Part shown: in pieces, positions 118-5,202 of the stretch
Numbering within the stretch: the first letter of the stretch is position 1
Layout: each line of letters opens with the position of its first letter
Assembly: GCF_021869535.1 (NCBI RefSeq)
Contig: NW_026262734.1
Coordinates: forward strand, 92,194,001-92,258,000
Source of the DNA: Mytilus californianus
Taxonomy: Eukaryota
DNA length: 64,000 nt
Reading direction: 5' to 3'
Notes under the pieces: model-generated
What the model was told of the DNA's origin: nothing
The model's input: the letters and a program-made list of their open reading frames with translations, nothing else
Databases searched by the model: none
Translations under genes and position numbers: made by a program

Positions 118-226
118 TTGCTGATATACTTAAAGCTGGCGACCAATCTGACTGCAGTATATTCAAATTTATTTCTCCTGAGATCTGATTAATATTTGGA
201 TGGTAAATTTTTGTGGTAAATTTTAC
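118..226 (-). CDS. E2 gene B exon 5 (HPN motif, Cys->Asn)
   Basis: tttcag|109 nt|gtaaga; [11 protein letters not shown]...GEINLNIL...WSPAL. Confidence 0.9.
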
Positions 227-3200
227 CTGAAATCAGAAAAAGAAGATATCAGATAATTCAAGGAACTGTTACTAAAAACTTGGGAAGCATATCTTCTATA
301 ATTTTTACAATTCATGTTTATTGTTACACTAATGGAAGGCAATTACTATCAAAATGTGTCCTTTTTATATCTTCTGATACGTTTTAGTACTGGTAAGCAA
401 AACACTTTTATGTTAGAAAATGCCAGGTGGATATCATTTTAACATTCATTAGATAAGTAATATTAGAATAGGCATACTTACCCATGGTGGTTTCATTTGA
501 TAACGACTTGGAATCAATATAAGTAAGAAGAATACTCCTCCATGGTAAGGACTTTCATCCTATAACAATAAATAAAGACTGCGTCGATACCACTATTGGT
601 GGAGTTTTTATTCCCCGAGGGTATCACCAGCCCAGTAGTCAGCACTTCTGTGTTGACATGAGTTATCATTGATATGGTCATAATTATAAATTAACTGTTT
701 ACAAAACTTTGAATTTTTGAAATACTTAGACTTTTCTACCTCAGGAATAGATTACCTTAGCTGTATTTGGCAAAATTTTTAGGAATGTTTGGTCTTCAAT
801 GCGCTTCAATTTCGTAATTTGGCCCTTTTTTTTTATTCGAGCGTCACTGGTGAGTCTTTTGTAGACGAAATGCGCGTCTTGCGCAAATACAAAATTTCAA
901 TCCTGGTATCTATGATGAGTTTATTTATATATATCATCAGCATCATCAGCACTGGTTAATCTATACAATTCGCTGTTTTATATTTTTCAGGTCAGATAGG
1001 CTTCCATTCTCGACGAATAGATGCAAGGGCGAGACATATAGACCTTAACTTTCCTTAACATCATTAATTGAGTAATACAATAAGTCTTTGTGAATATAGA
1101 AAAAAACCGATTGAAGCTTCTTATGTTTTCTTCCGTAGTTTATTTCCACAAGACAAAAAATTAAAGGGGTACAAAACACCTAAGGGAATTAACTCTTTAA
1201 ACATCGGCTGAACGTTTTAATCAATGATCAAAATTATTCTTTGTCAAACTGCTATACTTCCAAATAATTCCTGTAAATTGTGTGGTTTAATTTTTTTAGA
1301 AATTTCTATATTTTTGTCAACAAGTCAAAATAAATATTTTATGAAAATTTTATGAAAAGTAAACGAGTCAAATCTATTTTAGTCGAAGTGTTTGGTACCC
1401 CCATTAATAAGGGTTATCCATTTAACCTTTATTTACGATTCCTTTACCGATTTAAATCATTTTAAACTCATTTATGAGAAAGCTTATACTCACAGGTCCC
1501 GCTATCATTCCTTGCCATGTGCATACTGAAAATCCAAAATAAAGGATTAATATTTTTATCGTTGGGTTCATGTCTCATTGACGTTTTTATGACAGTTGTA
1601 AATTCGTTTGATATGTTTGAGCTTTTGATTTTGTCATTTGATTAGAGACTTCCCGTTTTGAATTTTCCTCGGAGTTCAATACTTTTGTGATTTTACTTTT
1701 TACCAAAAATCTCATTTTATTCGTATTATTTACTTATACTCTGTTTCCTATATTTTTACATTTGTTTACATATTTTTATTTAAAACACAGTTCTCTAATA
1801 TTCAAAGCTGTATGTTATCTTAATTCAATACAGATTCTATCAGGAAGGTGGACAATTCATACCTTATAATTAAAGAATTTATGAGAGAAATAGATCCTCA
1901 GATGAATAGACAACTAACAAAGTCAAAGACATGTATCGAAAAATGTTCTAGGTATTCTTTAAGCTTCTACAAGCTACGGTTTTTAAATATTTTGGTATGC
2001 TTTTACATTTTACCAACTGGCTTAATTATCCAATAAAAGTTATCCTAACTAATCCATATCAGCTCCGAGTACAGTAAATGTATATTTCTATTATACATCG
2101 AGACCATGTGCCTATCCCAATCAATGAACGCCATTAATGGTAGAGGAAATTTTGGTGTGATGACAGATTTTAAATAGTTTGCTTTTTGTTGAACCATCCA
2201 CTATATATTTGTGCTTGTATAAATCATGATATCGGGACTATATGATTCGTTGATGTGTGTGTGTTTATTTGTCAATAATTTTGGAGGAGACGGTGATATG
2301 ATGATATGTTATGGTCTCAGTTGTTGTATTGTAATTCTTGCTAGCCTCTCATGTATTATTTTATAGACCCGAGACAATTTAGGGATATGATGTATAGATA
2401 TCTGCATGGTGTAGAAGACATTAAAATGCCCTCTTGGTATCTTTTTGTTATGTATGTCGATGAGTTGCTGTTTCATTGACCTCATCCCTATCTCCTTTTG
2501 TTTAATGTGAAACAGTTCCCATATCGGAAAACAATTAAATAATTTGAAATAAACAATTTATTAATGGTGTCTTTTTACTCATTACAGTCATTGACTCAGA
2601 CTATATGCAACTACTGAATGATATTTGCCTATAATTATTAAAAATCTAGTTTCAAGCTTACAATCCTCGCCTAATAGTCCTGCTGAAGAACTCGGAGGAG
2701 GGTATCTAGAAATGTCTAAAAGTTCCTGAAAGAAAATATTCACATCTTATTAATGCAAAGTAGGTCTATCAAAAATGGAAACAGTTAGAGACACTGTCAT
2801 GACTGTATCGATAAAGGAGCAATGGAAATTGGCAATATTAGGAAATAACAAGAGGCTCCTACGAGCATGAACCACTCGCCGTCTGTTATAAATCAATCTA
2901 TTCTTCGTTTCCAGGTATTACGCAAAAAAGACGAACATTTTAATTTAAGGACAATAAATCTAAACTATAAACAGGAATAATTGGCCTCGGAAAGATTTGT
3001 ATACTTCAGCTTCACAAGGGAAAATCAAAACAATTATTTACGACAAAAGAGACGATATTTCGTTCCCCATTGTATTTTTTACCTTTTGTGGGCGGTGATG
3101 TTTGTTTGGTCCCTTCTTATGTAGTGTATAGTTCCATCTCGTTCGTTATGCTCGTGTCTATAGTGACGTTTTAGGTCAGGGATTTCGTTAATATAAATTA

Positions 3201-5202
3201 CTTAAAACTTAAACTGAATGTTTTCATAGATATAAAGATTTTGTTTTAAAGTTTGGCTGTAACCATTGAAAACGGGATATCATATCCTAATATTTACGGA
3301 AATGTTGTGTATAAAGCCCGTATATTTAGATACGATCCATGCAAACTCATTCATCCTTAGAATAAACTTTAAAATTCTTGAAGGATTTCAATTAAACATC
3401 GTAGTAAGATCTTTGAATGTTGTTTTATCGGTTTTAACATTATTTTGTTTCTGATTAATAAAAAACACTGAACTGATCATATTGCTGTACATTTATGAGA
3501 ACTTAGGGTCCTACATTCTGTCAATATTATGTACTTATGTTTTGACATCGAACAAGGTCATGCTTTCTCAATCAATTTATGACGGCCTTACACTAAATCC
3601 GTTAGAGGTGTTCTAATTGATACTTTAGTCAGAGAAAACATGATTTATTTATAAGTTGTAATAGTCTTTGAACTAGTTTTTAGTATCTGCGATTACTTTT
3701 ACATTGGTGATTTGTGTCGTTTGTCTTTATATAAGTTGCTTTCTGTGATCTATTGAGTCAAGCAATTTCCAACCGCTTTTTACAGTTCGTTCTTATTTTT
3801 ACATGATAAGAAGTCATTCAATCTTTGGTGTAGGTCATATTTGCATTTTTGTAGGTCTTATATTGTTGATCCTAATTGCTGCTAAATCTTTCGAACAATT
3901 TAGTTTAAACAGTATTTATTCAAACAAATCATCACATAAAGATATTATACACTTGAAATAAATCTCTAAAATTTAGAGACAAGCAAAGTTGCTTTTACAA
4001 ATCTGTCTCCTAGACATGATGATGGGTTATGTCGTATCGTACTTTCTGATATAGGAAATTAGTCAAAAATCGTCATGGTATCTCCCGCTTCTTTTTAACT
4101 CATTTTGGAGGATGTCTTCCAATGTGCTCTGTATTATTGGTAATTTGTAGATATTGTATTGCTGCTATATTTTGCTGTTTACTGTTATTTCCAATCTATC
4201 ATATATAACATTTGGCAAAAACACAAACAAATATTCAAAATTGTAATTTGAGGTCAAATTAATCTCTTGCAAAGAGTCGTCTAATGGTATACGTATAGGT
4301 CACTAAGCATGTCTGGAGAATTTGTATTGTTGATATCTATTGTTGTTTAAAAGTTTTTGCCAGAGTAAGAATGGTTAAAATGTCTGATTGCCAGATACTT
4401 TGTATTTCGTTAGATATACTGGATTGAATAAGCATAGATTAAGTATTGCCAAAAATGCATCGTGACTGCGAAAAGGAAAGTTCAAATATGAATTCTTGCA
4501 TTTTCTTCAAGGTAAATTTCTTAGTTTACTCGAAGAATTAAAATCATTCGATAAAAGTGTTGTGAACTGGCTGTTTCTACATTGGCCTTGTTAACGATTC
4601 TCGATCAGCTGTATTGGACGTCGACTCTTCGAGTATCCGGCCAAATACAGCTAACCTTGAATATATGAAAGGACCAATACAGAAACAGCCAGTTAAAAGT
4701 ATGTATTTTAGTTTTCTAGATTATGGACAAAAAGGGCAAATACGCCTATAAGGAGTCCTCCCAAGGTTTGGGTCTTTTTTTCTAATTGTTTTATTTATAA
4801 CCCCTTCTGTTGTTTAGAGTTTTTGTCTCACAATTTAATGTTTTGAAATAATATGCAAATGGTGGAAATGGGAAGTAGAAATTAGATTTTGATGTCCTCA
4901 GCAATTTTGCACCCTGTCGAAATTTCTCAATTTATTATGGATTTTGAGACATTAGACAATTAATGCATTTTACCGTTATTCTATGTTAGCCTTGTCATTA
5001 TTGGGAACGAAATATATTAATAACATTTCGTGTGATTGTTGTATGTCAATACAATCTACGGTTTCTAATAAAACTTACATGTAATTTGATTGGTGTCTGT
5101 TGAATGTAGGCTATACTATTTATGTTTCCTGGTATACATATTGATATCAGGTTTCGTTATTTATGTTCAATTAATTACCTTTTTCAATCGACTTTCCGCC
5201 AT
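118..5202 (-). CDS. UBE2D/Ubc4-like E2 paralog B, catalytic Cys replaced by Asn (UEV-like); last exon lies beyond the window start
   Basis: Five exons with AG/GT borders and the canonical UBE2D sizes (exon 5 one codon longer): 5202-5179 (24 nt, MAESRLKK), 2725-2662 (64, [21 protein letters not shown]), 1525-1494 (32, [11 protein letters not shown]), 559-482 (78, [26 protein letters not shown]), 226-118 (109, [36 protein letters not shown]). Phases join in frame. Confidence 0.88.
482..559 (-). CDS. E2 gene B exon 4
   Basis: gttatag|78 nt|gtaagt; SPYHGGVFF...KPP. Confidence 0.88.
570..930 (+). mobile_element. Interspersed repeat ending in a hammerhead motif (Penelope-like terminal repeat type)
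   Basis: Same family recurs at about 7510-7710, 19850-19960 (-), 32490-32790 and 33230-33325 (-). Confidence 0.6.
841..884 (+). ncRNA. Minimal type I hammerhead ribozyme motif, mutated core (CUGGUGA)
   Basis: GCGTCA CTGGTGA GTC ttttgta GAC GAAA T gcgc GTC TTGCGC. Confidence 0.55.
1494..1525 (-). CDS. E2 gene B exon 3
   Basis: ttttcag|32 nt|gtgagt; TWQGMIAGP. Confidence 0.85.
2662..2725 (-). CDS. E2 gene B exon 2
   Basis: ttttctttcag|...64 nt...|gtaagc; [16 protein letters not shown]. Confidence 0.88.
2990..3800 (+). mobile_element. Degenerate 3' fragment of a Penelope-like retroelement
   Basis: Translates in pieces to [13 protein letters not shown]...PSY...RYARV; alignable to the 26230-27150 copy including the 3' tail. 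Confidence 0.6.
4565..4694. mobile_element. 130-bp palindromic MITE-like element
   Basis: Ends AACTGGCTGTTTCTACATTGGCC ... GGACCAATACAGAAACAGCCAGTT are inverted repeats. Confidence 0.55.
5179..5202 (-). CDS. E2 gene B coding exon 1
   Basis: acaaATGGCGGAAAGTCGATTGAAAAAG|gtaatt; same size and start context as gene A exon 1. Confidence 0.8.

Follow-up and report, generated by a model that had tools for sequence, protein, structure and literature searches.

A UBE2D-type E2 variant without the catalytic cysteine in a mussel-specific tandem cluster of E2 genes in Mytilus californianus

The window analyzed here is a stretch of 64,000 nucleotides (nt) of Mytilus californianus DNA (RefSeq assembly GCF_021869535.1, contig NW_026262734.1, also on record as JAKFGE010000008.1, positions 92,194,001 to 92,258,000 of the forward strand), which carries on its minus strand two tandem genes of the ubiquitin-conjugating enzyme (E2) family, called gene A and gene B in the following. 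Judged from its sequence, gene B is an independently derived UBE2D-type pseudo-E2, similar to the ubiquitin E2 variants (UEVs), within a mussel-specific tandem cluster of E2 genes. The reading regarded as likely, short of certain, is that gene B is a non-catalytic UEV-type pseudo-E2 of tandem-duplicate origin, which is maintained under moderate purifying selection and acts by binding. The features of gene B in the window are the following.

5203-5232, minus strand: conserved block abutting the ATG, 5' untranslated region (UTR) or core promoter, ~30 nt with hardly any variation among four species of Mytilus.
5179-5202, minus strand: exon 1, ATG and codons 1-8 (MAESRLKK), GT donor next to it, identical in three other Mytilus species.
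2662-2725, minus strand: exon 2, 64 nt, holds Ser22, AG/GT borders.
1494-1525, minus strand: exon 3, microexon of 32 nt, holds the B-specific Cys31, AG/GT borders.
482-559, minus strand: exon 4, 78 nt, YQMKPP with Gln61-Met62 at 499-494, AG/GT borders.
118-226, minus strand: exon 5, 109 nt, HPN, former active site and WSPAL, AG/GT borders.
167-169, minus strand: codon 86, AAT (Asn86) at the place of the catalytic Cys (UBE2D Cys85), TGT in gene A.
161-163, minus strand: codon 88, AAT (Asn88) at the place of UBE2D Asp87, GAC in gene A.

The five exons in the window join into one open frame with canonical splice sites. Exons, splice sites and frame lie exactly where an earlier note on this DNA had put them when it described an intact gene structure, and its count of 68 identical residues out of 102 between the translated exons of genes B and A was reproduced. 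The replacement of Cys by Asn and of Asp by Asn, the change of YPFKPP to YQMKPP and the retention of HPN, WSPAL, Arg5 and Ser22, all of which that note had also reported, were seen again in the letters of the window. Regarding exon 6, which the note had suspected to the left of the window and whose disruption would have spoken against a working gene, an intact copy was found at positions 25495-25634 of L003, a fetched M. californianus locus that matches the window exactly (window position x is L003 position 24247-x) and extends 1.9 kb past its left end. This exon lies 1249-1388 nt left of window base 1 and has an AG acceptor, a length of 140 nt, no indels relative to M. galloprovincialis and a TAA stop; gene B is therefore a complete open reading frame (ORF) of 148 amino acids (aa). 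The fastest-evolving exon is exon 2, with 75% nucleotide identity to M. galloprovincialis. The window as a whole is AT-rich animal DNA. Introns 3 and 1 of gene B (window 575-1800 and 2880-3330) contain highly repeated transposon sequence, for which a depth of 1e5-1e6 was recorded in DNA runs and RNA was abundant from both strands.

Residue conservation was judged by aligning 45 members of the family. Gene B is altered at the near-invariant catalytic positions Cys86, Asp88, Asn115, Pro119 and Leu120 (B numbering); in UBE2D numbering, the replaced shell comprises C85, D87, K101, N114 and the loop 116-121. The copy in the window has D87N, N114F and the loop NNLHKS in columns that are at least 90% conserved among the 45 members. 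The place about eight residues past HPN, where an active UBE2D enzyme has its Cys, is taken by Asn in the window and by Tyr, Tyr and Phe in the orthologs, and the shell of an active enzyme (Asp87, Asn114, Asp117 and the gate loop) is likewise missing from gene B. The invariant structural columns are retained (Gly39, Gly48, Pro57, Tyr60, Pro65, the FTTKIYH block, Gly83, Trp-Ser-Pro-Ala, Leu104 and Pro116), and in M. californianus alone the invariant Pro61 has become Gln. A replaced catalytic shell combined with retained fold residues typifies a pseudoenzyme that has been preserved for the sake of its fold and surfaces. Fixed in all gene B orthologs relative to gene A are 29 substitutions, among them K4S, F31C, F62M, K102A and N115F, whereas the positions that vary within gene B (35 in total) cluster at residues 58-66 and 79-93.

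Regarding family membership, the gene B orthologs of M. galloprovincialis, M. trossulus and M. edulis (P0001, P0028 and P0030) yielded scores of 144-147 bits against Pfam PF00179 (UQ_con; cut-off 27), and the 102-aa product of the window matched PF00179 proteins only, reaching canonical E2s down to E 1e-29. All of the 60 best solved relatives of gene B were UBE2D-type or Ubc4/5-type E2s (E ~1e-50). The AlphaFold2 (AF2) model of the M. edulis ortholog has a mean confidence (pLDDT) of 92.7 and canonical ubiquitin-conjugating (UBC) topology, and is weakest at the remodelled block 111-120. Gene B thus belongs to the UBC/E2 superfamily, with the Pfam scan and the AF2 model referring to the orthologs and not to the full protein of the window, and in the broad sense it is a UEV or pseudo-E2, with an E2-like sequence and fold minus the catalytic cysteine. 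It does not belong to the classical UEV1/Mms2 lineage: the solved relatives are of UBE2D type, and the tree groups gene B with the mussel paralogs A and C (gene C is described below). The proposal of an intact UBE2D-type paralog that has lost the canonical thioester site, in a lineage apart from Mms2/Uev1, is thereby upheld. In an alignment of 70 UBE2D-like database proteins, the only members without the Cys were the Mytilus B proteins, P0004 (an ENA contig) and P0022 (Gigaspora margarita), the latter two with Ser.

It may be asked whether the Asn codon is genuine. An explanation by faulty sequencing or assembly, or by a rare allele in a gene that is otherwise active, is close to refuted: an independent DNA contig from another run (X2, window 62-334) matches the window except at positions 262 and 284, and thus carries the same letters at 167-169, as probably does a second DNA contig (X3, 1-441), which shows six differences, five of them located outside exon 5 of gene B. 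The reads with Cys at this position that the earlier note had named as contrary evidence did not appear, as the DNA contigs show Asn, and Cys is missing from every gene B ortholog. No support for an error was found beyond the general observation that mussel haplotypes are very divergent, one run having a two-base change in codon 46. That change, located at window 543-544 on a DNA contig of run X2, turns His46 into Ser; the contig also has intron changes at 562, 574 and 577 and represents a divergent allele or a close copy.

The best database match to gene B is the M. galloprovincialis protein P0001, which is 75% identical and also lacks the catalytic Cys. At the corresponding locus (L001) the ortholog of gene A is followed 2.6 kb downstream, on the same strand, by the ortholog of gene B, and the same order is found in M. 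trossulus (L004) and M. edulis (L005). The gene B orthologs of all three species have six exons, 148 aa, equal exon lengths and canonical splice sites. Codon 86 of gene B is AAT in M. californianus, TTT in M. edulis and TAT in the other two species, whereas every A gene has TGT; Tyr stands at the catalytic place in P0029, another protein model from M. edulis. At the place of codon 88, Asn is also found in M. edulis, whereas M. galloprovincialis and M. trossulus keep Asp. As to whether Asn is fixed across individuals and species, a check that the earlier note had proposed, the DNA contigs show Asn, and the orthologs all lack Cys but have Tyr, Tyr and Phe and not Asn. P0029 (319 aa) is a single model that fuses genes A and B.

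The dS between genes A and B (synonymous divergence) is about 0.6-0.7, and the duplication is therefore older than the split of the Mytilus species. Under parsimony, a single loss of the Cys via TAT on the stem of the B clade, followed by AAT and TTT, requires three changes, whereas independent losses require four. The difference of two bases between AAT and TGT, which the earlier note had read as a two-base change, was confirmed as such, and the codon comparison explains it most simply by two successive single changes. On the same comparison the dead site of gene B is older than the split of the Mytilus species. The description of gene B as newly derived is thus not supported, since four species of Mytilus have a gene without the Cys at this very place and their divergence is younger than the split between A and B.

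Selection was estimated by the method of Nei and Gojobori (NG86) against the M. galloprovincialis orthologs, with gene B taken over five exons, as follows (dN, nonsynonymous divergence; omega, dN/dS).

Gene A: dS 0.22, dN 0.016, omega 0.07.
Gene B, five exons: dS 0.34, dN 0.135, omega 0.40.

A self-written maximum-likelihood branch codon model (GY-type with F3x4, run on a fixed tree with three sequences of gene A and four of gene B) gave an omega of 0.035 for gene A, 0.38 for the stem and 0.26 for the B clade. Fixing the omega of the B clade at 1 costs 15.3 log-likelihood units (p = 3e-8, likelihood-ratio test (LRT)), and tying it to the omega of gene A costs 8.7 units (p = 3e-5, LRT). A dN/dS near 1, named at the outset as a sign against a maintained gene, was thus not observed, the B clade being clearly below 1. 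Neutral rates of indels and mismatches were measured in the introns of gene B itself, in which 20-24% of positions mismatch and gaps occur at 0.018 events per aligned nt, 76% of these events not being multiples of three. In a neutral simulation over the californianus half-path, the probability was 0.037 for no premature stop, 0.074 for keeping the ten splice dinucleotides and 0.047 for no frameshift, and the joint neutral probability of gene B staying intact was about 1e-4. By these sequence comparisons gene B is held by purifying selection, with a constraint much weaker than that on gene A. Orthologs of gene B share 116-121 of 148 residues, compared with 143 of 148 among the orthologs of gene A.

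Transcription was assessed from public runs and from conservation outside the coding exons. The first ~100 nt of the 3'UTR of gene B are conserved among Mytilus species, and the block upstream of the ATG is nearly invariant, compared with the 20-24% difference of the introns. All seven sampled 31-mers of exon 5 were found in 18 runs, and most of the seven in two more (10 studies in total). These runs are mostly transcriptome-sized (29-174 million letters, compared with more than 1100 for genomic runs of M. californianus), and one of them is on record as RNA-seq. Four are labelled M. californianus and the rest stand under two other species labels. With exon 5 of the window, the loci of M. galloprovincialis, M. 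trossulus and M. edulis have 0-4 of 79 31-mers in common, and a closer relative, perhaps a sister species, probably carries a near-identical exon 5 of gene B. In RNA-seq run X4 (sampled at 6%), exon 4 was covered by 17 reads at 543-544, all of them first-mate-on-plus, with zero reads at the intron positions 471 and 562. The depth is thus bounded by the edges of exon 4, and the strand sense is the one that a standard stranded library would give for a gene on the minus strand. Transcription of gene B is accordingly probable, while a full-length spliced mRNA is beyond the evidence at hand. Look-ups of the gene B orthologs returned genome contigs only and no transcript evidence.

Several observations weigh against a maintained and expressed gene B. 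The omega of the terminal californianus branch is 0.40 and indistinguishable from 1 (p = 0.17, in a test of low power). The residue at the catalytic site is variable (Asn, Tyr or Phe) and 35 of 148 positions vary among the orthologs, and gene B is therefore fast-evolving. Run X4, at its 6% sampling, had no depth on exons 1-2, which is either real or an effect of 5'-end coverage and of each short exon being assigned to a single place. No exon-exon joint of gene B was present among the joints listed, which were the best-supported ones, transposon-related and from DNA runs. The depth of run X4 at 181-226 is probably inflated by reads of gene A, as the two genes are distinguished there by 1 nt in 39, and the M. 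californianus annotation has no protein-coding gene at the place of gene B. The search for spliced transcripts that the earlier note had called for was consequently successful in part, yielding exon-bounded and strand-specific depth but neither a junction among the listed joints nor depth on exons 1-2.

These observations bear on the alternative that gene B lost its function together with the Cys and now drifts as an unprocessed pseudogene, or is on the way to that state in M. californianus. The missing annotation, the omega of the californianus branch (not significantly below 1), the lack of RNA depth on exons 1-2, the loss of the invariant Pro61 in M. californianus only and a protein-level divergence about five times faster in gene B than in gene A are all in line with such drift. 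It is nevertheless considered improbable, given that four species keep the ORF, the start codon, the frame and every one of the ten splice dinucleotides (joint neutral probability on the californianus half-path ~1e-4), that the clade-wide omega of 0.26 differs from 1 at p = 3e-8, that the structural invariants, the upstream block and the 3'UTR are conserved, and that exon 5 is found in transcriptome-sized runs. On omega, four-species intactness and the neutral simulation gene B is thus classed as a maintained gene and not as a pseudogene, with the omega of the californianus branch taken alone at 0.40 (p = 0.17).

Compared with the active E2s of the UBE2D/UbcH5/Ubc4-5 group, gene B has the same fold, the same length class, the Pfam UQ_con domain and the best matches in the PDB (E ~1e-50). 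It keeps HPN, the Ser-Pro-Ala loop, Arg5 and Ser22, and has the six-exon plan of gene A. Unlike UBE2D it has Asn, Tyr or Phe for Cys, replacements of Asp87, Lys101, Asn114 and the loop 116-121, Met for Phe62, and the one-residue insertion of its subfamily ahead of the active site. Laboratory C85A and C85S mutants of UBE2D bind ubiquitin ligases (E3s) and are used as dominant negatives or as stable conjugate mimics. They share with gene B a UBE2D scaffold without the thiol, whereas gene B is natural, appears to be maintained by selection and has further changes in the active-site loop and the L1 loop.

By definition, a UEV is a protein with the UBC fold that forms no thioester since the catalytic Cys is missing (PMC7215765). 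The classical UEVs (Mms2 and Uev1A/UBE2V1-2) resemble gene B in having a UBC fold without the catalytic Cys, but they form an ancient separate lineage with the dedicated partner Ubc13, whereas gene B is a young derivative of a UBE2D-like gene. Mms2 positions ubiquitin for Ubc13 (PMC10211241). In Arabidopsis, the E2 variant COP10 also lacks the Cys; it acts through binding, and active E2s are modulated or enhanced by it (PMC7215765, citing Yanagawa 2004; Lau and Deng 2009). COP10 is a plant protein in the CDD complex with DDB1 and DET1, and gene B is likened to it only as a Cys-less E2 variant with a putative binding role. Cys-less E2 variants are already well known, and gene B therefore opens no new category. 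A literature search for papers on these mussel genes returned none.

In the proposed history, gene B would have arisen when the mussel-specific, UBE2D-like gene A was duplicated in tandem, at a time before the extant species of Mytilus diverged. An early loss of the catalytic Cys (TGT to TAT, then AAT in M. californianus and TTT in M. edulis) would have followed, and moderate purifying selection would have preserved an intact gene B ever since. From E2 enzymology, a protein that lacks the thiol and in which other residues stand at the acceptor-lysine and gate-loop positions could not plausibly carry ubiquitin; if gene B cannot be charged, it would therefore have to act by binding. It retains Arg5/Lys8 of helix 1, the Ser-Pro-Ala motif of L2 and Ser22 of the backside. 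At the Phe62 position gene B has Met, a residue that presumably also serves Ubc13 there for RING binding; in the Ubc13 review consulted, Met64 is not mentioned. The protein may occupy RING or U-box E3s, E1 or ubiquitin and thereby modulate the active paralogs, by competing or, like Mms2 or COP10, by serving as a cofactor. In view of the retained residues, such occupation of E3s, E1 or ubiquitin is put forward as the most likely role of gene B. The role as partner or inhibitor of gene A that the earlier note had suggested stays a conjecture.

A more specific proposal would make gene B the dedicated heterodimeric cofactor of gene A, steering the chain type as in the Ubc13-Mms2 pair and not competing. 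The tandem arrangement is retained in four species, Ser22 is kept, and precedents exist in Mms2, which positions ubiquitin for Ubc13 (PMC10211241), and in COP10, which enhances E2 activity (PMC7215765, citing Yanagawa 2004). An A-B interface is without support, gene B comes from UBE2D and not from the UEV1/Mms2 lineage, and gene A is near-frozen (omega 0.035) while gene B changes fast, with no sign of co-evolution; the proposal is regarded as unlikely. Far less probable still is that gene B remains an enzyme by means of another nucleophile such as the B-specific Cys31. The substitution F31C is fixed in four gene B orthologs and absent from gene A, and pseudoenzymes with migrated catalytic residues are known (PMC10211241), but residue 31 is placed by the model in the beta-sheet (strand 29-38), on the face predicted to point away from the active-site cleft, and D87, N114 and the loop 116-121 are also replaced. 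Action by binding remains the preferred reading of gene B.

The description of gene B as a tandem paralog of gene A was correct, but the simple pair of A and B was not, as the locus is a larger cluster with several altered members. A third tandem gene, C, is located in M. edulis at L005 16307-23929 (147 aa) and is partly visible in L001 (from 19168) and L004 (near 24424); it has Phe at the catalytic place, HPV for HPN and a six-residue deletion in the gate loop. On its sequence, gene C is a second, more degenerate Cys-less E2 of the same array. Farther to the left on this chromosome of M. californianus, at 125-160 kb from the window, two more members of the subfamily lie in tandem (L006), one of them similar to P0089 (HLN for HPN, Cys kept) and the other P0087 (Cys retained, Gly for Asp87). 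The P0087 intron at that locus contains a helicase-like ORF, and a search for encoding contigs of P0089 found no record. In M. galloprovincialis, P0080 (on the L001 contig) has Ser at the catalytic place; it is a 206-aa model that fuses the first exons of gene C with a P0087-like paralog carrying the Ser.

The one-residue insertion before the active site is common to A, B, C, P0087 and P0089 and absent from canonical UBE2D. In the protein tree, A, B and C form a clade with a support of 96, and C stands beside A with an ultrafast bootstrap (UFBoot) of 92. Because the tree sets C beside A, the catalytic cysteine was probably lost twice, in B and in C. A single loss common to B and C is disfavoured by the same placement (UFBoot 92), albeit at low confidence, with C on a long branch.

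Upstream of gene A, at about window 29.4-31 kb, lies a gene for a Toll-like receptor. A UBE2D-like cluster beside Toll-like receptor genes might represent a birth-and-death family that yields dead or altered E2s as fast-evolving regulators or decoys of RING E3s, for instance in innate immunity, in which case the variable L1 and pre-active-site loops of gene B would have been shaped by diversifying selection and not by relaxation; this is thought rather improbable.

The active neighbour of gene B is located in the window as follows.

8092-20998, minus strand: gene A, 148 aa, exons 20998-20975, 19809-19746, 14710-14679, 11853-11776, 10870-10762 and 8231-8092.

The product of gene A is 100% identical to M. 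californianus XP_052074155 (P0027). In intron 3 (window 13198-14710, minus strand) the 32-nt exon 3 with its splice donor is repeated about nine times with a period of 66 nt, and AG precedes some of the copies; RefSeq lists 119-aa isoforms of gene A whose first residue is the exon 3 Met (P0031). Intron 2 (window 15464-19681) contains an element of the long terminal repeat (LTR) type that is bounded on either side by direct repeats of ~790 nt and has a long plus-strand ORF.

The orthologs of gene B are named as ubiquitin-conjugating enzymes in the databases (E2-17 kDa-like, E2 D4-like), although they could not plausibly be such enzymes. If it is a working pseudo-E2, gene B would be a natural, independently evolved counterpart of a 'dominant-negative-like' UBE2D. 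It would then represent a young conversion of an enzyme into a binder, with the active parent adjoining and a history that is readable across close species, and would be suited to asking which surfaces of an E2 stay under selection once catalysis has been lost.

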